Source: Octopus bimaculoides
Lineage: Eukaryota
Reading direction: 5' to 3'
Assembly: GCF_001194135.2 (NCBI RefSeq)
Contig: NC_068983.1
Coordinates: 90,536,308-90,580,977 of the forward strand
DNA length: 44,670 bases
The notes beneath the pieces were generated by a model. That model was not told where the DNA came from. It did no database searches and saw only the letters and a list, made by a program, of their open reading frames with translations. This document shows positions 3,024-43,891 of this stretch, piece by piece (position 1 is the first letter of the stretch; each line of letters begins with the position of its first letter). The translations under genes and the position numbers were made by a program.

Positions 3024-6000
3024 TATTTACATATTTACATATTTTTTTTAGTATCTCTTTCGCTTGGGCATTATCTCAAGGTCTGCTTTCTTTTTCTTAT
3101 GCTGGTTCAACTTTTGGTACCAGTACATTGAATATTTCACCGAATACTTCCTTGGGAATTTCTTCCATGTTCTTGTGTATGCTTCTTCCTTAGTTGGTTT
3201 ATATGTCTCTTATGTTCACCATGTGACCCTTTAATTAGATACATCATACTTCCAATTTTTCTGGTAACAGGGCCATCTTCCCAGCCTTCTTTACTGTTTC
3301 TATAGGTTTTGAAATGTACTTTATCACCTATCTCGATGTATTTCATTGGCGTTTTCATATTTCCTTTAGATCTTTTTTTCTCTCGTAATAGCTTAGCAAA
3401 AATGGATTTTATTCTTCTTGCGAACATCAACTCTGCAGGAGATTTCCCTGAATTTGTACTTGGATTGGTGGTCATTCTGTATATTCTTAAGAAATTTGCC
3501 AGTGCTTCGTATTACTTAATTCATTCCTTGCTTTTCTTAACACTCTTTTAAAGGTGTCCACAAATCTTTCTACCTGTCTGTTTGACCTCAGGTGGTAAGG
3601 TGGAGTGAAAATATGCTTTATTGTATGCCTTTTACAGAAGTTCTTGAATTCATACCCAGAGAACTGCATTTCGTTGTCTGAAACTAGCGTGTCAGTGACA
3701 CTGTATCATGCAAACAATTCATATAAAAATTTTAGAGTTCTCTTAGAGATTGGTCTATAGCACCTGCAGACCTCCAGCCACTTAGTACACCTACCTACTA
3801 CGATTAGGTAATAAGCACCATTTACTGGTTCGGCATAGTCAATGTGTAACCTAGACCATGGGTTCTCTGTCTCTGGCCATGATTGATATTTTACCAGTGG
3901 GGCTTTAGTTGCGAGCGCGCAACTTCAGCATGTTCTCACCAAGTTTTTGATATCTCAGTCCATAGATAGTCAATAGACATAATTTCAGAGCCTTCATCCT
4001 TGCCATTCCTGGATGACCGCTATGCAATTGTTGCAATACACCTTTTTGTACTGAAGTTGGAACCACCACTCTTTGGGCATACATCAAAATATCATCGCAA
4101 ATTGAAAAACTACTGGCATCTAAATTTTTATTGTTTATTTTTTTAAAGCTTCTTTTATTTTTGTAACACACTCAGCACCTACAGCTTTCATTCTTATATC
4201 CTGTGCTGCCACTGGTAGTTCTTGGATAACATTCATCATAACACTTTTAATTTTACTTTCTGCCTGCAGTGCGGCTGTAACAGTCTCTTGTAGTGGTTCC
4301 ATATTTTTTGGAATTAATCTCAAAAGGCAGTTTGCATGACCGATTTTTTTCAATGGAATGTATTGCTTTTGAAATTATGATTTAGTAATATTACACCCCA
4401 ACATTGCAGGTGGTTCACAGTATGAGTTGGCAACCTTTTTTTAGACCCATAAATCGACAGCAAAGGTCTATGGTTTGTTTACAATAAAAAACTTCTGCCA
4501 TGCAGAAACTTGTGAAATTTTTTAACTGCAATAATGATTGCTAGGGCCTCGTTTTCAATTTGACTATATCTCTTCTCTGCTGCTATTAGTGAGCGCAAAA
4601 CATGAACCACTGGTTTTGTATTTCCATTTTCATATTTATGAAGTAGAACTGCACCTAATCCATGCTTGGAAGCATCAGACACTACAATGATGTCCATTTC
4701 AGGATCGTAATGCGCTAAAGACAGGTCTGAGATTATAATTTTTTTTATTTCTTCAAAAGTATTCTGGCATTTAGTGGACCAATTCCACTTTACTCCTTTT
4801 TTTTAATAAGTCGTTCAATGGAGCTCTTAACTTGTGCGTATTAGGAATGTAATTTTGGTAGTAGTTTTGCCCTCAATGAGTCAGGACATCTACCACTTTT
4901 ACCAATTATTTGCCCTAAGTACTTAATTTGGGGTAGAGAAAATTTGCATTTTTCTTCACTCAAAGTGAACCCAAAAACTTTAATTTTCTCAAACACAGCC
5001 TTTATGTGTTCCACATGCTGTTCATGAGAATTACTCTTGGTCAAAATATCGTCCAAGTACGGGATTGCAAATTCACAATTAGCTAACAAAGTATCCATGA
5101 TTTGCTGGAATATTGCTGATGCCATTTTTAATCCAAAAGGTAATCGTGTGTATCTGTACAATTCTCTGTGTGTATTTATTGTTAAATACTTTGAGCATTT
5201 TTCATTTACCTTTATCTGTAAATAGGCTTCAGACAGATCTAATTTGGAAAAAAATTTTCCACCATTTAACTTTGAAAAAGTCTCCTCTGCTGTCAGGAGT
5301 GGATGGTGGTATGTTTTTAAGCAGTTGTTCAGTCCTGTAGAGAAATTGGCACACAACCTAATCTTATTGTTTTTTTTTTTAATACATACCATGAGTGCTG
5401 CCCACTTCAAGTAATCCACCTTTTTGATGACTTCACTCTTTTTAAGTCTGTCCAACTCTTCATCTACGGTTTCAATTGCCATAAATAGTACTTTTCTGTT
5501 TGCTTTAAATACAGGTACAACATTTTCACTTACTTGGAAATAGACTTCCATTTTTTACATAGACCTAACTCCTCTGATAATACTTGCAGGAACATTTTTT
5601 ACAATTTTTCCTTCAGTTCTTCCAAAGGCTTGTTTTTAATGGGACAACCATTTGTGCTATTGCAGTAAAGATTTATGGGGAAGTGCTATAAATTGAATAG
5701 TTCTAACCAATCTGTGCCAAACAGATTGACTGTATTATCCACAATGAATAATTTTGCTTCACATGTCCCTCCTCGAAATGTGACATTGATACATCTTTTG
5801 CCCATGAAATGTAAATTATCGCCCATTACACCATGCACTATTTTCGCTGTTTTATGTAATTTTGGTTTACAAGTTTTTTCCAAGTATCTGCATTTATAAT
5901 CGAGATATCACTACCTGTGTCTAACTGTAATTTGGTATTCACATCATTTATTTTTATGTGCACGAATTTTCTTGTTTTTCCATCACAATCACTCTCTGCT

Positions 6001-6589
6001 CAAAACACCTTAGAACTTTTTGTTTGAGCCTCGTAGTCTTGTTCTGCAATGAGAACTCCTGTGTCCCAGTTTCTGACAGCTATAGCACTTTTTGTTTTTA
6101 AATGGATGATCCTTTTTGTAGTGTAGCCCTCCACAACTACAAACAGCGTGGATTGGGGCCTGACACTTTTTTTTTATTGTGCTTCCCAGGATGACAAATT
6201 TGAATTTTTGCAGAGTCTTTATTTTGTATTTTTTCACATCTTGTTTAAGATTTACCATAGTTTGACATTCTTCTGCAATGGTCTGCAGAGATAAATCCTG
6301 GTTTGTTTGCTCCATTTTCAAGAGAACCCTTGCCCAAATTTCTCTATCTTCAGGTGCTATAAGCCTTTGCATAAAGGTAAGTGATTTGAACATATCCTGA
6401 GTGAGATCCTGGAGTTTGAAATTTTCACACATATGGTTGACTATTCCAGTGTAGGTGATAAAATCATCCTTCTCATGTTTTGTTAAGTTCCAACACTCCA
6501 TTCTGGTGTTAAATAATAAACTTCTATCACAAAAAAGTTTTGAAAGCAGTTCCACTGTTTCTTGGAAACCAATCTCTCAACTTTTTGGG

Positions 6590-9300
6590 CAAAAATAAAG
6601 TTACAGTAATGCTTATGTTTGGCAGGAGCTATCTGTACTCTCTCCAGATGTGACAGTACCCATTCAGTAGAAATCCACAGGTCCGAGAGACTTGGACACT
6701 GTACTATTGCATGCAGAACAATTTTGTTGCTCTGCCTGCAACATGGGCATGTAGGCGAAACTGTGAGGCCATGCCTCGCTAGTTTATCCTGAACTGGCTA
6801 GGCACTTTGGAAGCACAGCCAAATCAGGGACCTCTGGAAGTTGTCCATAGGTCCCAGGTCGAAAGTCCTTCGATGCAGTTTGGCAAGCTGACTTTCATCG
6901 AAACCCAGTGTCTCCTCCAGGCCATCATCAAACTTGCCCTCTACCAGCCCTCTATAGTATGCTGTGGTGGTACCCCCTCCACCGGCATTGCTCATTCGGG
7001 AGAAGCACGAGAGCCTGTCGACACTCTGCTTGTTAAGCTCCCAGCCTTGGTCTGCACCTGATCCAGCATTCCAGTTCATCAAAAGAGGTGAACCTGAGAA
7101 ATATCTCATCAATGAATGGAGACCACACCCACTCACCATCCAGGTAGAGCCAGAGATGCCTCACACATGTTTGCACATCTTTAGCCACAGCATCCTTAAC
7201 CCACCCTTTAGTGGCTGTTGGCAGCAGATAGAGCACTTTACAAGAGGCCACCTGCCCTCCCACAAGAAGTGTTCCAACTTGTTTAGCCACGAATCGGGGT
7301 ATGGCACGACGGTTAGGCAGTAGGTAATGACAGATGCGATAAACACATTTGCCACTTCTACCCTCCCTTTCAGGGATAGCCTCTGCCCAAACCAGGGCTG
7401 AGTTATGGACACCACCCTGCTTATAACCTTGCTCCAATTCTTCTCTATTTGGAGGTCTGGACTAAACTAGACTCCAAACATTTTCACCAGACTGTCTGTC
7501 CAGCGTACAATAATGCTATTGGACAGCATTGACTTGCCTCTTCAGGAGCCGAGCTGCAAGCTGACCAACTTATCTTGGTTAATTCTTGCTCCTGCCACCG
7601 CTTTGTAATCCTTTAGGGCCTCACCTACCCTCTGTAGGTCCTGGTCCCTGGATATGATGACAGTGACATCGTCCACATATGCTGAGACTGACTTTCCATA
7701 CCCTAGATCTTGTGGGTCTCCACTTGTCACCTACAATCTTCATAGTAGTGGCTTGAGCGCCAATACAGACAGCAGGGGCTAGAGTGGACAACCTTGAAGA
7801 ACCAAATGTTTGATATTGAATGGCTCTGAAAAAAACTGTTCACCTGAACTACTGACTTGATGTTGCTATATAAAGCATTGATCCAACCTTGGAATGTCAG
7901 GCCAAAACCGCTCACCTCAAGGACCACCACCAGATATAAATGGTCTACCTTATCAAAGGTTTTGGATTGGTCTAAATGGGCCAACGCCCCACCTTGCCAG
8001 GAATCCTATTTACCCTTTCTAAGGTATAGCATATAAAGTGGAGATTATCATGTATGGTCCTACCAAGGATGGCACAAGTTTGCACTTCCCCAATGATACC
8101 ATCGATGACTTTTGCCAACCTTTTTGCTAAAACCTTGGGCAGAATCTTCAACTCTGCGTTAAGCAGAGTGATGGGCCTAAAGTTGTTAGTTACGTCCTTC
8201 TTGTTTGGATCCTTTCTGATCAGTACCACTATTCCCTGGCTTACAGATGCAGGAATACTCCCATTCTGCTGCTGGTTATTAAAGGTACAGGCCAGCAGGT
8301 GCCCAAAGAAGTTTGGCATAGTATAGTACAATTCATAAAAGAGACCATCGTGACCCAATGACCTGTCTCCAGCACACTCCGACAATGCCTCCTCCACTTC
8401 TGCAGCTGTGATTGACCCTTCACAGCACTACACCTCCCTCCCCAAGAGGCGTGGTAGACTGGTGAGGAAGTCCGTGAGGTCCTCCCTATGCTCTGGTCCA
8501 TCACCCCACCCCCACCCGAAACAGTCCAGCGAAATGCTCATGTACGGCTGTACACATTTCCTCAGGTTTGGTTACCATTTGCCCCTGTTGGTTCATCAAA
8601 GACCTTATTGTGGCATTATTGCCATGCTGAGACTCTACCACATGAGCCCATCTGGCGGAGTTAATACCATGTTGGCCCATTGCGCATATCTTCACTCTGA
8701 CTCTACAACCCTTATGTTTAGCCTCAAGGTGATGGCTGAGCGCCATTCTCACAGTCAGCACTTGAGAAGCAGAGCCAGATCTCATTGCCTTCTCCAATGC
8801 GTTTACTAAGTGTCTTTCTACACTATTTCTATTCTCAGTTAACTCTCTACTAATCAACTCTTTTTCTATGGCTCTTTTGAGGGCATACCAACATTCGTTG
8901 TTAATAATGGTCCCTGTCAATGCCCTTATCACTAACTGTCTAATCCAACTCATGTAGGCATCACAGGTCAGTAGCAACTTACTTATCTTCCAGTAGCTGG
9001 ATCCCTGTCTAGTCGTACTACCTACATCCAGCTTATAGGTCATCAGTTTGTGATCACTGTAGCTGACAATGGTTAATTGTGGACACCTAGCTATATTCTT
9101 GTCCTTAATCCTTATTATTATTCTATCTAGGTAAGATCTAGATGACCCATCATTTCTTGACCATATCCAATGTGGAACATGCAGGTGATCTAGTCTGTAT
9201 CAATCTGCCAGCTGGAAACATCTGAGCAGATCGTTGAGGCAACAGCTTACCTTCCTAAAACGATTTGAGCCAGCATAATCTACGCATGCATTGCAGATTG
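6590..9300 (-). mobile_element. Tx1/L1-clade LINE, 5'-truncated, degenerate ORF2
   Basis: APE C-terminus SYLDRI...SDH (~9040-9140), FRPITLLNAELKIL, DQSKTFDKVDH, QGCPLSPLL, SAYVDD (7542-7730), GGLRMLWL, and a zf-RVT-like end (CPCC...LHAIVQCP) at ~6690-6760. Confidence 0.88.
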
Positions 9301-15690: not shown

Positions 15691-16700
15691 GTTAAATCTG
15701 CAAAAAAGAGAAAGATATATTGCATACCAACATGATTTTTTGCATATCTTCTCCTAAACAGTTGTCCTACCTTTCCTGTAAAGGTAACAGCTCTACTTGT
15801 TTGTGATACCCTTAAAGCCAGGAACTTTTCAACACTCCCTCACAGGTGGATAAGCATACTGAGAAACTGGATAAAGATATAAGAAGTAGGATAAGAAATA
15901 CAGGGGATAAAAACAGTAGCCATCAATATAAAGGCAAATATCGAAGAAGAATGGATAAAAATAATCATAAGGACAAAGAGAAGAAAATAGTGGTTAAGAA
16001 TAAAATAACCAAATTTAATCCAAGTTGAAAAAGCTATAGTAGAAACTTCAATAGTTTTACTAAACTCAATAAAGCATTACATAAAGATGACATATTATGG
16101 TTAATCCAGTATTTGGATTACAAGTCAAATCCAAAATTGTCCCTGAATCTTTCTCTGCATTAGATAGACATTTTCTTAGGTCTTTAACTAGCATAGGGGG
16201 AAATTGTCACATGTGATATTCCACAACCTAGAATACTACATGCATAGAGTAAAAAATAAAAAGCTAAATAAGTTAAGACTAGAATATGATAACAGAACTC
16301 AGAATAGTGCAAATTTGGGACAGGATAATAACTATTCTGAAAATCTTGATGTAAATGGCAACATTAGCATGGAGGAATGACTTAGAAAACAGAACAAAAA
16401 CAAATGGAGATGGAGTTATGGAAGAAACATTCAGAAACAATCAAAATAGAAAAAAACAATAGCAATTGCACAAATATGCACAATGTGAAATGAACTAAGA
16501 ATAAGAATGAAATTAGAGGAAGCTAGGTTACAAAAAATGAAATTAAAAGTGCAGCTTCTGAAACTTGAGAAAGAACATCATATATGAATGTAAAGTAGAA
16601 ACAAATGCACATACATATGCATACTTAGGTGCAATGAGCAACACTCTCAAAACCGCCTTAGAAACCACTGTAATAGTGTAGCAATTCTCAATTTCCTTAA

Positions 16701-16926: not shown

Positions 16927-19900
16927 TTCTCTTCTGCTGAAGAATCTGAGTACTACCAGGTGAGTTCGATACGTTTTTAAGCATCAAAATATAACATGGG
17001 GCATTCCAATATTCCAGATAGTTTATGTCTTTTGATTTTGCAAATTGTATGAGTGTAGGTGCTGTTCACCAACCTTTCAGTTTCTTAAGTTTTATGAGTG
17101 TAGATGCTGTTGAGCTGCTTTCAATTGCTCACGATATCAAGTTTTGAGTTGTTAGTTTCTTCTTTAGAATCGATACCACTACTGGTTCTGGTTTCAATTG
17201 TCGGTGTTTCCACTTTGAGATTATTCACAGGTTCCTGGTTGCACAGTGAGGTATCAAGCTCAGTTGGCATATCTCCCACCCAGAGCCAGATGTTTCAATG
17301 AAGCCATTTCCTCCTTGCCACTTGAGTGTACATGAGTGTACTGTGGATTGCATTCAAGTAATTCAAACTTTTCTACTGCTGGATCGTATTTTGAGAACCG
17401 CTGTTGTTTCTTCAGAAGCACAGGTCCACCCTTCACTTGCCACTCTGATAGTGAGATTCCAGAAGTTGAGCGGTGGTGAAAAACTGAACAGCTCCTCATG
17501 AGGCGTGGTGTTAGTGGCCATACAGAGGAAGAAGCGAAAAGAGTGCAGAGCATCAACGAGTATGCACTGCCAGTGACTCACACTCAGTCCCTTAGACTTC
17601 AATGCCAAAGTAATGGTTTTCCATAAAGTTGAATTGAGCCTTTCAACTTTGCCATTCCCCACTGGATTGTATGGAGTTGTCCTGCTGGTTGCTATGCCTT
17701 TATCAAGGAGGAATTGTTTCAGTTCAGCTGACATGAAGCCAGTGCCATAATCAAAACGGATGAAAGGAGTCCAAAAATCGAAAATAGTTGATAAAGACAA
17801 TGAATGACAATAGCAGCTGATATATCTGACCATGCAAATGCAAATGGAAAGAAGGAAAATTCATCGATAATAGTGAGTAAATATTTGTTGTGATTAGTGG
17901 ATGGGAGTGGACCCTTGAAGTTTACACTTAATCTCTCAAACGGCTGAGTGGCCTTCACAATTTTAGCTTCAGTGGCACAAAAAATCTAGGCTTCAGTTTG
18001 GTGCATGTGGGACATTGAGATGCCACAGATCTTATGTCATGAGTGGAAAATGGTAGATTCTTTGACTGCATAAAATGAAGCAATCTTGTCACACCTGGAT
18101 AGCACAAAGAATTGTGGAGGTGTGTAAGGTCCATGGGGTAGAAGATGCACAATAACCCTAAGAAAAAGCATCTGCAGCTTTGTTCTCCATACCTGGCCAA
18201 TAAGCAACATTGTATTCGAAAGAAGATAGCTCAATCCGCCATCATAATATCTTGCCGTTCTTGACTTTACCTTAGTGTTCGTTGTTGAACCTGAAAGCCA
18301 CAGACTGTTGGATGGTCACTAACTGAAAATGAACTCCAATAAGGTAGTGTTTACATTTACAAAGAGTTTGAGTAAGGGCGTAGGCTTTCTCTTCCACTAA
18401 GGTATGGTTCTGTTCACTGGAGTAAGCATTCTGAAGAAGAAGGATACAAGTTATTCATTCTGGTTCAAGGTTGCACTGATAGTAATATCAGAAGCATCTG
18501 TCTCCACAATCAAAGGTACTTGATGGTCAATGGTGACCAAAGCAGTGCCCTCAAGCTCTGACTTAAGGTTCCAGAATGATTGTTCGACAATATCAGGGGT
18601 GGAGGAAAGGTCTTATAATGTATCAAGGGTGTGATTTTGTTGGAAAATGGGCGATTCAGTGAGAATAATAAGCAAACATCCCGATGATCCTCTCATGTGC
18701 AAACATCCTGATGATCCATCTTGAGGAGACAGGAGCTCGTGTAAGGGGCAGAATCATTCTGGATTTAGTCTGATTACCTCTTTGGACACTTTGTAATGCA
18801 GGAGCGTGATAGTCCTGGGGCAATGACTATTTTCTTATCATTGAAAGTAAGCCCATATGTCTTTGCGACCTGTAGGAATCTTTCACAATTCTCATCATGT
18901 TCTCTTCAGTTATGCCCACATATTGTGACATTGTCAATATAGGCGAAAGTATCCTGTAGTTTTATTTGTTAGATAAGATTATCAATGATATGTTGAAAAC
19001 AAGCCATACCATTTTTGACTCTGAATGGTATACGATGGAATTGATATAGGTCCTCACGTGCTTTGAATGATGTAAATTTTTTCTCATCTTTGCATATAGG
19101 GATCTGATGATAAGCACTCTTAAGATCAAAAGTAGTGAATATCTTGTAGCGAGATATTTTCTCAACCAGCTCATCAATACATGGCACAGGATAGGTGTCG
19201 AGTTGTGTGCATTAATTGATTGTCTGACTATAATTGATTACCATTTGCCTTTTGTGTGAGTCATCACTGGTGACTAAAACTTGCATCCTCCTGGGAAAAT
19301 GAGATGGTTCAATGATTTGTTCCAATAAAAGACAGCTGACTTCACTTTCGACAAATTTCTGATCCAGCAATGACAGGTGCCTGGGTTTAGTAGCAATAGG
19401 TTTGCAATGTAGTGAAAGCGACCCAAATAGTGTAGGAATGTCAACATGAGCCGCTGTCAAGCCACAAAGTGAAAATGGAGGTCTGAGTCCTCTGAAGGCT
19501 ATGTTTACTTGTTCATGCTGGTTCAAAAAATCGTGCCCAAGTAAGACATCTGAGCAAAGCTCAGGTAAAAGTGAAAGCTTCATATTGGGGGTAATCATTG
19601 TCACAATAGATCAATTTGGCAAAACAGTGACCTCATGTAACACTTGACAAGGTAGTAAAGGCCATCAAAATTGGAGTGTTTGATGGATGGATATGCTAAC
19701 AATGTGAGTGTACAATATGAGATGATATCTAACTATCGGAGCTTCCAGTATCAACCAGAGTGTTGAGTTTCACTCCATTTATATATACTTTAACAACAGC
19801 AGAAAACAATGATACTGGAAGAGCTGCAGAGAATATGGCAGACAATGTTGGATCTGTGTATGTAACAAAGCATTTGTTCATGCGAGATGATTGATATACC

Positions 19901-22870: not shown

Positions 22871-22953
22871 NNNNNNNNNNNNNNNNNNNNNNNNNNNNNN
22901 NNNNNNNNNNNNNNNNNNNNNNNNNNNNNNNNNNNNNNNNNNNNNNNNNNNNN
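22871..22953. other. Assembly gap (83 N)
   Basis: Run of N. Confidence 1.
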
Positions 22954-26091: not shown

Positions 26092-26140
<49 letters not shown>

Positions 26141-26301
26141 CGTCCTAATCATCATTGAATGGTTCATTTTCCATGCTGGTATAGGTTGGACACACACATG
26201 TATATGTGTGTGTGTATGGATACAGATATAGATATAAAACATTGTACATTATTGTATATTATTATATATTGTTATATCAGATGTAATGATATCCATTGCA
26301 G

Positions 26302-26393
26302 TACCAATATTGATGCTCTTGTAGATGAGATCACCTTAAAAGAACCATTAGTTACTGCAGCAAAATCAGGCCAATTGAAAACACTTGTTTCTC
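26302..26393 (+). CDS. DAW1: DAW1/WDR69/ODA16 internal exon (92 nt): TNIDALVDEITLKEPLVTAAKSGQLKTLVS
   Basis: CAG acceptor at 26299-26301. The translation matches the ODA16 N-terminal domain (vertebrate recalled as [25 protein letters not shown]). It ends at an ATATCCTT donor. Confidence 0.85.
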
Positions 26394-27653
26394 ATATCCT
26401 TTTGATAATTTCTATCATAAATTTACATTATTTCTGAATAGCAGTCAGGTCATAAATATCCCTATACTCGCTAGCCTTTATCCTATGAAGAAACAGGTTG
26501 ATATAATAAGTTATGTCCAAATCTGGGTATGCTAAACCGATTTATCTGTCCAAGCTTTAGAAAAACAATGCTCTATTGCTCAGGTTGAGTTTCACTCTCA
26601 CTTCATAGAGTCATTTAGACTATACATGAGGTTTATGAATGAAGGACAGTTTTTGTGGTTTTACATGCAATTTTAGTCAGTTTATTCTCTGATTACTTAG
26701 ATCAGTCTAATGTAATCCAGTTTTCTTACAGTTATATTCTACCTACTTTCCATAGAATAAGAAAAATTTGTCACTCCAAACCACCATTAATTAATTTTAC
26801 TGTACTACCTGTGTTTCCTCTGATCAGCCACACTGTTCACTGATATTTACAGTTACATAAACAGAGCCAAGTTAGGTGTCTCAGGTTTGAATGCATTACC
26901 AGTGCTGATGAGAAAATATGAGCTGCCAATATCTTGACTTTTCTTCTTTTAATGCTGTTGTCAGAGTTTGAAAGACAGCGTTCATAATCCATTTCCAGGT
27001 CTTACAAGTGTGAAGAAAGAAGTTATATTGACACTGGTTCAAATGATTTCAACAGTGTGTACTCTGAAAAGGATACCCAAAGGCTAGATGTTGGTATTAA
27101 AGCAGGTGACAGTATAAGTCTACCTCCCAACAACAAAGATTGCCCCTCTAATAGGCTTGCATACAGTCTCTGTCTGCCAACTTTCATTCACAGAGATTGA
27201 GTCAAACTGAGGCTATGGTAGAAGACACTTATCTACATTGTATGGTAATAAAGTGAGAGTGATTCTAAAACTACATTTTTGTGAGTGAACTTTTTAATCA
27301 GACAGCTACATTGTCCATTATGGTATCACATGGCTTTTGAAAATAGAAAATATTGGATTGATAGTTTAGTTATCATACACACACACACACACACACACAT
27401 GCAATACTTTCTTGATTGGTTTATGCAGCATTTGGTAATTGAGATTAGATATAGAAATCAAATCTGGCAAATGATTTTGATAGTGGTTGAGGTGTGGTTA
27501 AAATAGACATTACAATCAAAACAATAAAAAAGATATCATATCATTGATCTATATATGTGTTGGAGAGTTTACTGATAATTTGAAAGACCTTTTGTATCAT
27601 GTCTAAAATGATGGCCAATTGTCCTTTATTTAAAATTCTTTAACTTCAAGTAA
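26394..27653 (+). other. DAW1: U12-type (minor spliceosome) intron, AT-AA by homology (alternative AT-AC ending at 27659)
   Basis: 5' splice site ATATCCTTT and branch site TTCTTTAAC at 27636-27644. No usable GT donor occurs before the in-frame stop at 26435-26437. Confidence 0.8.
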
Positions 27654-27706
27654 GTTTACAGGAAAAACTGTCACTCTCTATAAACCATGAGTTTTACCTG
27701 TTCAAG
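27654..27706 (+). CDS. DAW1: DAW1 exon (53 nt): (R)LQEKLSLSINHEFYLFK
   Basis: Matches vertebrate RLQEKL...HTFYLFK and ends at a GTAAGT donor. The start could be 27651 or 27660. Confidence 0.85.
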
Positions 27707-30283: not shown

Positions 30284-30342
30284 GTACTTAGAGCCCACAT
30301 ATTACCACTGACTAATGTGGCTTTTAACAAGTCTGGTTCATG
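30284..30342 (+). CDS. DAW1: DAW1 exon (59 nt): VLRAHILPLTNVAFNKSGS
   Basis: CAG / GTAAGC boundaries; near identity to ODA16/DAW1 as recalled; phase fits both neighbours. Confidence 0.95.
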
Positions 30343-33071: not shown

Positions 33072-33949
33072 TGAGGTCTGATCAATAAGTATTCAGACTG
33101 TTGCCATAGTAACGAATGCAGAGTGAAACCACTTGCTGGAAATTGACCTTGAACTCTGCTGTGCATGAGCACTAAGTTTTAACATTTTAGCTCACTTCCA
33201 CTGTTTACAGTAGTGCTTGGAAGGAAGGTGTGTAGCATGTGATCGTCACATTGACCATGACAGAGAATGTTGTCATGACAATACTTGCTTAGAGTCTGAT
33301 GCAAAGTTTAAGAAAGTGTATGGAGAGGAGTGTATGAGCCACACACAAGTGTATGAGTGGTTCAGACGTTTCCAAGATAGTACAAAAAATGTCAATATTG
33401 ACAAACATTTTGGGAGACCTGCAACCAGCAGAACTGAGAAAAGGATCGCAGATGTGAGTGCAGCTGTGAGAGGAAATCATCGAATCACCATCTGTGAGTT
33501 ATCAAAGGATGTGCAGATTAGTTACAGTTCAGTTCAGTCCATTATCACTGAAGATTTGGGTATGAGATGCCTATCTGCCATGTTTGTGCCAAAACTGCTT
33601 TCAGCTGACCAAAAAGACACTCGGGTTTCAGTTGTGCAAGATCTCCCTGATTGTGTGGAGAATGATGAAAACTTTTTGAAAACTTTGCGTAGGCCTCTGA
33701 GCAGGTATTGCCAAGCTCTTGTCAAAATTTGATGCAGATTCTCTTTTCAACTTTCTCTGTCATAATCAATGTGACGATCACATGCTACACACCTTCCTTC
33801 CAAGCACTGCTGTAAACAGCAGAAGTGAGTTAGAATGTGAAAACTTAGTGCCCATGAATCCAAGATCAATCTGTGCCAAGCGGCTTCACTCTGTGTGCTT
33901 TAACTTCGTTACTATGGCAACAGTCCGGATACTTATTGATCAGATCATG
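33072..33949 (+). mobile_element. Mariner internal-deletion derivative (about 880 bp) with both TIRs; retains HTH region, lacks DD34D domain
   Basis: TIRs tgaggtctgatcaataagtattcagactgttgccatagtaacgaa (33072-) and ttcgttactatggcaacagtccggatacttattgatcaga (33905-). TA precedes the left end. ORF 33217-33732 has KVYGEECMSHTQVYEWFRRF, GRP and FVPKLL. Confidence 0.88.
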
Positions 33950-34147: not shown

Positions 34148-34270
34148 TTTCATCACAGGAAGTTATGATCGTACATGTAAGATATGGGATACAGCCTCTG
34201 GAGAGGAACTTCATACACTGTATGGTCACAACAACGTCGTCTATGCAATCTCTTTTAATAACCCTTTTGG
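34148..34270 (+). CDS. DAW1: DAW1 exon (123 nt): (C)[40 protein letters not shown](G)
   Basis: CAG / GTATGC boundaries; WD40 repeat; phase continuous with 30342 and 38825. Confidence 0.95.
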
Positions 34271-35614
34271 GTATGCCATCCATCTTTCTTTTAGAATGGT
34301 TATATTTAGGCCCTAAGTAGTATACCACTTTCACTTTCTCAAATGGAGTACCAGTTTGTTTTGCAGCAGCACTGTGTTGCAGCCAGCTTTTTTTTGTTTT
34401 TTTAATCATGGAGTTTATTTTTTGATGAATTCAGTATTTTTTGTGTTGTTATTTAATATGTAAGAGTGTGATTATATCAAATTATTTAGACTTTTTGTTT
34501 TTGTCGTTTCTCATTTTTGTGAGATGGAAGGATGTGATTATATAAAGATTTGGGTTCATTTTCTAGCAGGTTAAGTGATTGATTAAAGACTTCACCACAA
34601 GGTAAAATAATAGAAATTATTCAATTAATTTTTTTTTTTACTTCAAATACAAAATTAAGTCATTTCTGTTTCTTTTTTTTTCTTCTTCGTTTTTTTTTTT
34701 AAATTAAAAAAAAATTTTTTTTTTTTAGAAAAAAAGATAAATAAGATAAATTTATTCACACAAAATAGCACTTTCTTTTCAGTTTCAGGACACTTACTTT
34801 TCGCTTTCACAAATGAATGATTTCAGATATATGAAATTAATATTGTTATGACAACTATAATCTTTAAAAAATAAAGGAAATTTTTGGCCAGTGTTTGACC
34901 ACTGTAATTTATAGTAAATTAGAGTAATTTTATATCATGAAACAGCAGATCTATGAAATGAACAATGACAGAATATATTGTTCATGGATAGCAATCATAA
35001 TCTTTTCAATGTTTGGTCTATTATTTATAATTGTGTAGAAACAAGGATAATTTTCCTAGAAGAATTTACCTATGTAGTCAGGTATCTTCAGTAATAATCT
35101 AACTAACAGTCTGAAAAGATAACTAATAGTCCTAGACAAACTGAAAGCCAAAGGTTGGGAATCACCTGCAAAAGTGATAGGTGATATATTGGTAATGGAG
35201 AGTCCTAAATCAAGTGAAAATTACTTTTCTTAAGATTGAAAATTGTATGTTATATATCATCTTCCCCTAAATTTATATTCTTTCTAACATAACAAAATTT
35301 TAAGCAAATACAATTACACCTTTCCATTTTTACAAAAACACAAAAATGAACAACAATAAAAATTTAAATAACATTATATAATCACACCATCCTATCTGAG
35401 ACAAAGATGAAATCTTAAAATATATTATATTGCACAAAACTGTGTAAAGATCTTCTGCAACTGCCAAACAAACTGGTACCAGCTAAAGTTTGAGAAAGTA
35501 AAAAATTGCTTTCATTTATTTATCATTTTGTGTTTTTCTTCTTTAGTGTACATTGACTTTTAATATTATTCATACTAGAACTATACCACAACCAATGACA
35601 ATTTCAGTAGAAAA

Positions 35615-38824: not shown

Positions 38825-38924
38825 AGACAAAATAGCAACTGGATCATTTGACAAGACATTTAGGTTATGGAATACAGAAACAGGAAATTGTTACCGCACC
38901 CACCGAGGTCACACAGCTGAAATT
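38825..38924 (+). CDS. DAW1: DAW1 exon (100 nt): [33 protein letters not shown]
   Basis: TAG acceptor, GTTAAG donor; WD40 repeat. Confidence 0.93.
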
Positions 38925-40878: not shown

Positions 40879-40986
40879 GTATGTTTGAGTTTTAACCCCC
40901 AAAGCACTATAGTTGCAACTGGCAGTATGGATACAGATGCAAAGCTGTGGGATGTACAAACTGGGAAAGAACTTTTTAATTTATCA
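40879..40986 (+). CDS. DAW1: DAW1 exon (108 nt): [36 protein letters not shown]
   Basis: CAG / GTAAGT boundaries; close match to DAW1 [25 protein letters not shown] as recalled. Confidence 0.96.
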
Positions 40987-41723
40987 GTAAGTTGACTGCT
41001 ATTTAACATCATAATAACATGAATTTTATAATATTTTGCTCTCCCCTATTCGTGTATGTGTGTGTGTGTGTATGCATGTGTGCACATACAGACCAAATTT
41101 GTGGCTGATGTAAAGTCCCAACCAAACCTAGGGTGGCATGGTGGTAGAACAGTGCACTTGACTGGGCCATTGGAGCAAAGAAATAGACCTGGAAGGGTGG
41201 CAGTAGCAAGTAACTATATCAAGTACTTTGAAGGGAAAAAGCTACCATGGATCTACCATGGATTGCTTCATTTTTAAAAACAAACTATTTTGTTATATTT
41301 TTAATCGAGGAGTAAAAAAATTTTTTAGACAGTTGATATGTTTTAGTAATTCATTTTGATCACCTACTTTAGTCGATTTATATATACTTTTTCTTGACAG
41401 GCCCTTCTATATATTTTATATTTTTATATGTGCATATATATTTTTTACCTTCTGTGCTTATATATATGTATTTCTTTTTATGTGTTGAAGGCCACGGTAT
41501 TATTTGTATATGAGGAAATGTATACAAGCATGGGGTTATATAAAGTCGTTGGCCCAAATTTGATGTTTGTTCTCTAATTAATGATTTATCTATAATATAA
41601 ATTGAAGTTGGCCGAGCGTTGTATTCTTTCTCGTCTTGAGGTTCACGACCAAACGGCTGGGTGGATTTGTGTGAAAATGGCACACATGTGGAGACGGGTG
41701 CATAGATTGGAACGCACTTTCTA

Positions 41724-43177: not shown

Positions 43178-43891
43178 NNNNNNNNNNNNNNNNNNNNNNN
43201 NNNNNNNNNNNNNNNNNNNNNNNNNNNNNNNNNNNNNNNNNNNNNNNNNNNNNNNNNNNNNNNNNNNNNNNNNNNNNNNNNNNNNNNNNNNNNNNNNNNN
43301 NNNNNNNNNNNNNNNNNNNNNNNNNNNNNNNNNNNNNNNNNNNNNNNNNNNNNNNNNNNNNNNNNNNNNNNNNNNNNNNNNNNNNNNNNNNNNNNNNNNN
43401 NNNNNNNNNNNNNNNNNNNNNNNNNNNNNNNNNNNNNNNNNNNNNNNNNNNNNNNNNNNNNNNNNNNNNNNNNNNNNNNNNNNNNNNNNNNNNNNNNNNN
43501 NNNNNNNNNNNNNNNNNNNNNNNNNNNNNNNNNNNNNNNNNNNNNNNNNNNNNNNNNNNNNNNNNNNNNNNNNNNNNNNNNNNNNNNNNNNNNNNNNNNN
43601 NNNNNNNNNNNNNNNNNNNNNNNNNNNNNNNNNNNNNNNNNNNNNNNNNNNNNNNNNNNNNNNNNNNNNNNNNNNNNNNNNNNNNNNNNNNNNNNNNNNN
43701 NNNNNNNNNNNNNNNNNNNNNNNNNNNNNNNNNNNNNNNNNNNNNNNNNNNNNNNNNNNNNNNNNNNNNNNNNNNNNNNNNNNNNNNNNNNNNNNNNNNN
43801 NNNNNNNNNNNNNNNNNNNNNNNNNNNNNNNNNNNNNNNNNNNNNNNNNNNNNNNNNNNNNNNNNNNNNNNNNNNNNNNNNNNNNNNNNNN
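43178..43891. other. Assembly gap (714 N)
   Basis: Run of N. Confidence 1.

Follow-up and report, generated by a model that had tools for sequence, protein, structure and literature searches.

A 44,670-nucleotide (nt) stretch of Octopus bimaculoides DNA (NCBI RefSeq assembly GCF_001194135.2, contig NC_068983.1, positions 90,536,308 to 90,580,977 of the forward strand), referred to below as the window and numbered from its first letter, contains part of the gene DAW1 on its plus strand. We find that one interval between two DAW1 coding exons is almost certainly a U12-type intron, and that the main productive 3' junction of this intron is probably AA|G at 27653|27654, which would give it the termini AT and AA. 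Its orthology and U12 type are supported by U12 introns at the same codon and phase in six other animals, and this comparative evidence is the decisive part of the case. From sequence we infer that the AA site is used, which of the substitutions leading to it came first, and that splicing of the intron in vivo depends on the minor spliceosome.

The DAW1 exons bordering the intron

A tblastn probe and two database searches identified the gene as DAW1 (WDR69/ODA16) on the plus strand. The best protein matches were DAW1/WDR69, with 74-76% identity over 178 amino acids and the source name "dynein assembly factor with WD repeat domains 1", confirming the gene name given by a first-pass annotation of the window. 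The DAW1 signature is also present, with an N-terminal …EPLIT…[RK]LxxKL…FYLFKVLRAHILPLTN followed by WD40 repeats. The window covers DAW1 only from the exon at 26302-26393 to the fourth downstream exon. The two coding exons that border the interval are the following.

26302..26393 (+): DAW1 coding exon of 92 nt, found by tblastn and blastp to orthologues; it encodes (x)TNIDALVDEITLKEPLVTAAKSGQLKTLVS plus C, base 1 of a split Arg codon, and ends …ACACTTGTTTCTC
27654..27706 (+): DAW1 coding exon of 53 nt; GT completes CGT (Arg), followed by LQEKLSLSINHEFYLFK

An AG acceptor at 26300-26301 directly precedes the 92-nt exon, and the 53-nt exon ends TTCAAG|gtaagt (27706|27707), with a GTAAGT donor from 27707.

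Sequence anatomy of the intron

The elements assigned to the interval are listed below; every position and sequence that the first-pass annotation gave for them was found in the window as claimed.

26394..27653 (+): inferred intron of 1260 nt, phase 1, AT…AA; boundaries placed by ungapped protein alignment and by nucleotide alignment of acceptor regions
26394..26402 (+): U12-type 5' splice site ATATCCTTT, A-type (AT subtype); an exact consensus match where homology ends
27636..27644 (+): putative branch site TTCTTTAAC; one C>T change relative to TTCCTTAAC, which still allows U-G wobble pairing with U12 small nuclear RNA (snRNA)

At the 5' end, ATATCCTTTT starts at 26394, directly after the last exon base (26393), and the first two intron bases (26394-26395) are AT. 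An RTATCCTT-type 5' splice site, in the form of ATATCCTTT, therefore adjoins the last homologous base. Reading on from the exon gives S-H-I-L-L-I-I-S-I-I-N-L-H-Y-F-stop, a run of 15 codons (open reading frame [ORF] 26159-26437), and no GT occurs between 26394 and the in-frame stop of this ORF. The exon thus behaves as had been described, with read-through ending in a stop and no usable GT on the way.

At the 3' end, the candidate branch adenosines are 27642 and 27643. The branch site is TCCTTRAC-like with one wobble-compatible mismatch, and it lies 10-11 nt from the inferred end, against an expected distance of about 10-20 nt. Homology picks up again at GTTTACAGGAAAAACTG (27654). The acceptor stretch reads ttcaAG(27649-50) tAA(27652-53) gtttAC(27658-59) AG(27660-61) gaaaaactg. 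Its spacer, TTCAAGTAA, is not pyrimidine-rich, and there is no polypyrimidine tract between the branch site and the exon. U12 introns have no polypyrimidine tract, and their optimum spacing from the branch to the 3' end is 11-13 nt (PMC3584512). Furthermore, phase 1 is consistent with the known bias of U12 introns, which avoid phase 0 (PMC7367187).

Taken together, these elements would allow the interval 26394-27653 to be removed from DAW1 as a phase-1 intron by the minor (U11/U12-dependent) spliceosome. U11 and then U6atac would pair with ATATCCTTT at the 5' end, while U12 would pair with TTCTTTAAC, leaving A27642 or A27643 bulged as the branch point. The second step would join C26393 to G27654, 10-11 nt past the branch, to yield the codon CGT and the peptide …LKTLVS-R-LQEKL….

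The U12 motifs are not enriched in the window when counted on their own. ATATCCTT was observed 2 times against 2.7 expected, TCCTTAAC with at most one mismatch 38 times against 40 expected, and GTATCCTT 2 times against 1.5 expected. The second copy of ATATCCTT, at 2360, has no coding context. The signal is the position of the motifs at the break in homology. The chance of an exact 8-mer falling on the very base where protein homology stops is ~2/89,340 per position, that of a branch-site match 8-20 nt before homology resumes is ~38/89,340 x 13, and arithmetic from these window counts puts the joint positional chance of donor and branch site on the order of 1e-7. Within the intron, GTATCCTT also matches by chance on the minus strand, at 27069-27076. 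The intron also holds a (CA)n microsatellite at 27378-27399, and further (CA)n/(TG)n repeats occur at 26094-26131 and elsewhere in the window.

Orthologous introns in other animals

To place the intron among its orthologues, genomic loci of DAW1 were parsed, and metagenome contigs were scanned once with a degenerate exon-2 pattern. An intron at the identical codon, in phase 1, was found in the amphioxus Branchiostoma lanceolatum, the coral Acropora digitifera, the scorpion Centruroides sculpturatus and three metazoan metagenome contigs (L022, L062 and L106). All six are U12-type GT-AG introns with a GTATCCT(T) donor, a TCCTTRAC-like branch site and 11-15 nt from the branch A to the 3' end. Their borders, written as exon|intron start…intron end|exon, are as follows.

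Branchiostoma lanceolatum: …TCAAGA|GTATCCTTTG…CATCCTTGACTTAGTCATTAG|AACTCCAG
Acropora digitifera: …TCATCA|GTATCCTTAA…TTGCCTTGACAAGATCTCCAACAG|GATTGCAG
Centruroides sculpturatus: …TAAGAA|GTATCCTTTG…TTATTCTTAATACAATTAAAAG|ATTTAAAA
L022: …GGGC|GTATCCTTGT…AATCCTTGACACAGATTCAG|GTCTTCAA
L062: …ATCC|GTATCCTTTT…GTCCTTAACGCATTAATATAG|GTTTACAGGAAAAG
L106: …ACAC|GTATCCTATT…TTCTTTAACCGACTCATCAG|GTTTACAGGAGAAG

The window shares with these loci the gene, the split codon (1|2, with R, K or N before an invariant L) and the intron class. The split Arg codon C|GT is common to the window and all three metagenome contigs. In L062 and L106 the agreement extends to the whole C|GT TTA CAG GA junction, the exon start GTTTACAGGA being identical at the nucleotide level in these two contigs and the window, and L106 also has the window's branch-site variant, TTCTTTAAC. 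In a MAFFT alignment of the acceptor regions, A27653 is aligned to the terminal G of AG in all six orthologues. The differences lie in the termini, which are G…G in the six introns but A…A in the window, in the branch-to-3' spacing (11-15 nt against 10-11 nt) and in length (282-4608 nt against 1260 nt). The first-pass annotation had proposed a U12-type intron that begins with AT and whose ancestral acceptor lay at 27653|27654, and both points gain support from the six animals with a U12 intron at the exact codon and phase. As to whether the intron and its terminal dinucleotide are conserved across DAW1 loci, which that annotation had raised, position and class are conserved in the six loci, but the terminal dinucleotide is not, being AG in all of them.

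By these alignments, the homologous 3' junction is at 27653|27654, and the DAW1 intron, to judge from the taxa that carry it, is older than the split between cnidarians and bilaterians and, wherever it persists, is of the U12 type. Other animals have a different arrangement at the same position. In the rotifer Rotaria socialis (L004, about 845-913), a 69-nt U2-type intron occupies the site, and several rotifer-like contigs (L026, L038, L047, L051, L054, L100, L121 and others) likewise interrupt this codon with a short intron of U2 type (GTAAAT…TTTTGAG); a U12-to-U2 conversion is likely here. The fluke Schistosoma has no intron at the site. The teleost Clarias magur and the gray whale likewise have none and instead carry one exon of 145 nt, equal to 92+53, matching the single vertebrate exon length given in the first-pass annotation. 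This one DAW1 position therefore parallels the known fates of U12 introns (Burge et al. 1998 as discussed in PMC7367187; PMC3584512), with retention in six taxa and the window, U2 conversion in Rotaria, and precise loss in Schistosoma, Clarias and gray whale. Compared with known subtype switching, the switch proposed for the window would end at AT-AA and not at the canonical AT-AC.

In the Centruroides sculpturatus locus (L003), the acceptor region and exon 2 are present as two identical blocks of ~140 nt, at about 15961-16100 and 17928-18067, 2 kb apart. The repeat may have arisen by tandem duplication, or else it is an artefact of the assembly.

Candidate 3' splice sites and the protein they would encode

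Every 3' end with a penultimate A was enumerated. The candidates are given below with their distances from A27643 / A27642 and the predicted consequence of their use.

Intron end 27650 (+): AG, 7 / 8 nt; in frame, LVS-LS-LQEKL
Intron end 27653 (27652..27653, +): AA, 10 / 11 nt; in frame, LVS-R-LQEKL; predicted junction TCTC|GTTTACAG
Intron end 27654 (27653..27654, +): AG, 11 / 12 nt; frameshift with a stop after 9 codons; 1 nt past the AA site
Intron end 27659 (27658..27659, +): AC, 16 / 17 nt; in frame, LVS-QEKL; predicted junction TCTC|AGGAAAAA
Intron end 27661 (27660-27661, +): AG, 18 / 19 nt; frameshift with an early stop

The two frameshifted products would have the junctions TCTC|TTTACAGG and TCTC|GAAAAACT. 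The three in-frame acceptors listed by the first-pass annotation behave as it described, but it overlooked the out-of-frame AG-27654 and AG-27661.

The predicted isoforms were scored with a profile hidden Markov model built from 172 distinct orthologue segments, the window being excluded. The AA isoform scored highest (106.8 bits), followed by the isoforms from AG-27650 (97.1 bits) and AC-27659 (91.9 bits) and by that from a cryptic GT(26387)-AG(27661) intron (84.3 bits). The residue after the junction is K or R in 129/133 gapless orthologues, and the following residue is L in 132/133. In line with this, the junction region aligned by blastp without a gap across the junction to 120 orthologues ranging from protists to mammals, and a MAFFT alignment had no indel between EPL and EKL in 161/172 orthologues. 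Among the ten indel-bearing orthologues listed, none lacks R/K-L apart from two broken gene models (P0131 and P0178). Judged against these orthologues, the AA junction is the only candidate that keeps the near-invariant [R/K]-L, in agreement with the first-pass annotation, which had argued that this site restores RLQEKL.

A version of the intron shifted by 1 nt (26395-27654, TA…AG, giving S-H-L) would also be in frame. It was rejected on two grounds: it contradicts the fixed position of U12 5' cleavage, and it places His where 129/133 orthologues have K/R.

The two broken models, both from EukProt, depart from all other orthologues exactly at this junction, P0131 reading …KLILHPVSETV and P0178 being truncated after …SKMEQ. 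Their sequences suggest that the same intron may be mis-annotated in other species.

Alternative readings of the junction

Several points weigh against the AA end as the main junction. At 10-11 nt, the distance from the branch to the AA is shorter than in any of the orthologues and lies at the lower edge of the functional range, and AG-27654, AC-27659 and AG-27661, all with a penultimate A, are also in range. In addition, Dietrich et al. 2005 reportedly found that introns with a 5' A favour C as their last base. Protein-database searches returned no match from this species or any mollusc, an exhaustive representative search with the 30-amino-acid exon peptide had 0 hits, exact look-up of 10 window ORFs found none of them in the collection, and an Rfam search of the whole window found no snRNA gene. 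Finally, U12 3' splice-site selection is known to be error-prone (PMC3584512).

The same U12 intron might instead end at the downstream AC (26394-27659), an alternative that the first-pass annotation also allowed for and that still stands beside AT-AA; this would make it an ordinary AT-AC intron, leave DAW1 without R-L and turn the AA into a decayed ancestral site. This AC is in frame and lies 16-17 nt from the branch A, within the 10-20 nt range, animal minor introns of the AT-AC type outnumber those of the AT-AA type ~20 to 1, and the reported preference for C after a 5' A speaks for it as well. Its use would, however, remove two near-invariant residues (K/R in 129/133 and L in 132/133 orthologues) and give a protein 15 bits below the AA isoform, and no such deletion occurs among the indel-bearing orthologues listed. 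Moreover, the GTTTAC that would become intronic is identical to the exon start of L062 and L106, and a distance of 16-17 nt departs more from the 11-13 nt optimum than one of 10-11 nt does. On balance, we regard the AC as an unlikely main junction. Choice of the 3' site could also be mixed, the productive AA competing with the AC and with the adjacent AG-27654, whose frameshift and premature stop would probably lead to nonsense-mediated decay. Expression would then be leaky or regulated, with a sizeable unproductive or variant share. The presence of four penultimate-A sites 10-19 nt from the branch A is in keeping with such a mixture, but AT-AG combinations have been described as disfavoured (PMC3584512), and in a conserved cilia gene selection would be expected to favour a junction that is productive and efficient; a substantial split appears quite improbable. 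If 3' choice were truly split in vivo, DAW1 output would be set by the 3'-site fidelity of the minor spliceosome, and the locus would offer a natural way of testing how the first and last nucleotides of U12 introns communicate during splicing.

Two further readings, each very improbable in our estimate, dispense with the AT-AA intron altogether. A27653 may reflect an error in base calling or assembly, or a minor allele, in which case the intron would be AT-AC or AT-AG. The base comes from a single assembly, and the window contains gaps (22871-22953 and 43178-43891), but the region is not of low complexity, and the per-base error rate is expected to be far below the ~4.5% prior that an AT-type intron ends in AA. 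Nor does A27653 call for an error, since AT-AA introns form a real class, with 823 conserved cases in animals. The interval could otherwise be a U2-type GT-AG intron that joins a cryptic exonic donor, CTT|GTTTCT (26387), to the AG at 27660-61 (junction AACACTT|GAAAAACTG), the U12-like motifs having arisen by chance. Both ATATCCTT and branch-site-like words do occur at chance frequency in the window, and TTTACAG|G resembles a weak U2-type acceptor. Against this, the sole in-frame GT donor (GTTTCT) is very weak, five conserved residues would be lost, the product has the worst score (84.3 bits), there is no polypyrimidine tract, and six orthologous loci have an unambiguous U12 intron at the exact site.

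History of the intron termini

With AA|G taken as the main junction, both terminal Gs of a GT-AG intron would have changed to A in the lineage of the window, giving AT-AA. The first-pass annotation had proposed an AC>AA change at the 3' end. The outgroups do not support this, as all six introns are GT-AG, with a G aligned to 27653; a G>A change at this position is thus more parsimonious than AC>AA, which costs one more substitution. Dietrich et al., in 2001 and 2005, are said to have found that the penultimate A is essential, that an intron with a 5' A splices to any 3' base, with C preferred, and that one with a 5' G splices poorly to a 3' A. The order would then be GT-AG to AT-AG to AT-AA, the 5' change probably coming first because, under this rule, a 5' A tolerates any 3' terminal base while a 5' G does not tolerate a 3' A. 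We propose only tentatively, and with a small chance of its being right as a whole, that a lineage-specific double G>A switch in an otherwise deeply conserved U12 intron left the productive AA with a frameshifting AG 1 nt and an in-frame AC 6 nt away, and that 3' choice in vivo may be split among these sites.

Relation to known minor introns

AT-AN ("A-type") introns, AT-AA among them, are a recognised class (Levine & Durbin 2001, Dietrich et al. 2005 as cited in PMC8280824), and AT-AA is the commonest non-canonical minor-intron terminus in animals and plants (Larue & Roy 2023, PMC10639083). Among conserved animal minor introns, GT-AG accounts for 74.2%, AT-AC for 21.8%, AT-AA for 1.12% (823 introns), AT-AT for 0.95% and AT-AG for 0.89% (Larue & Roy 2023 Supplementary Table S1, PMC10639083), so that AT-AA makes up ~4.5% of the AT-type introns in this set. 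Molluscs are relatively rich in minor introns (Larue & Roy 2023, PMC10639083). The DAW1 intron resembles known AT-AA and other A-type AT-AN U12 introns in its ATATCCTT donor, its TCCTTAAC-like branch site near the 3' end, the lack of a polypyrimidine tract, its non-zero phase and the penultimate and terminal A of its predicted 3' end. Nothing categorical sets it apart from known AT-AA introns; the differences are a spacing at the short end (10-11 nt), an in-frame AC and two AGs in range, and an AA end whose use is inferred from homology. The DAW1 AT-AA intron is therefore a further case of an already catalogued type. It does not change what is known of minor splicing, AT-AA being already the best documented of the non-canonical minor-intron classes, and would not surprise a specialist.

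We found no paper joining "DAW1" with "minor intron", which is expected, as vertebrates have lost the intron. The main value of the finding is practical and concerns annotation. Predictors built on GT-AG borders cannot see an AT-AA intron, so that gene models of DAW1 in this genome probably miss an exon, run on into the intron or drop 1-5 conserved residues. Its value for the study of intron evolution is modest, in that a single position would show all the known fates of U12 introns (being retained, switching subtype, converting to U2-type and being precisely lost) and would offer a dated example of a GT-AG to AT-AA change.

Remaining DAW1 exons and other features of the window

The DAW1 exons downstream of the 53-nt exon are listed below. 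The remaining DAW1 introns in the window are all GT-AG.

30284..30342 (+): next DAW1 exon, VLRAHILPLTNVAFNKSGS plus TG; GT-AG borders
34148..34274 (+): DAW1 exon, first WD repeat, …NNPFG; GT-AG borders
38825..38923 (+): DAW1 exon, …HTAEI; GT-AG borders
40879..40987 (+): DAW1 exon, …ELFNLS plus G; GT-AG borders; the last DAW1 exon seen in the window

A search of the 26 kb upstream (window 1-26301) by tblastn and regular expressions did not turn up the 5' exons of DAW1, the ones that code for MKLKRFLLRYYPPG and GIILEYE…IDLLDL in orthologues. Either the preceding intron is longer than 26 kb or these exons are too diverged or too short to be detected. Runs of N mark assembly gaps at 22871-22953 (83 bases) and 43178-43891 (714 bases). 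As the second gap lies downstream of the last exon seen, the next DAW1 exon may be hidden within it or may lie beyond the window.

The upstream stretch is filled with retroelement debris, located at 4844-5551 (-), 6013-6555 (-) and 7975-8397 (-). Its parts are a reverse-transcriptase ORF (RVT_1, E value 7.6e-28), a gag-like ORF with a CCHC zinc knuckle that falls just short of the Pfam cut-off, and another RVT_1 fragment that also misses the cut-off. Within the intron between the exons at 30284-30342 and 34148-34274, an ORF at 33217-33729 (+) has a Mos1/mariner-type HTH_48 domain (E value 3.3e-05) and is probably a transposase remnant.

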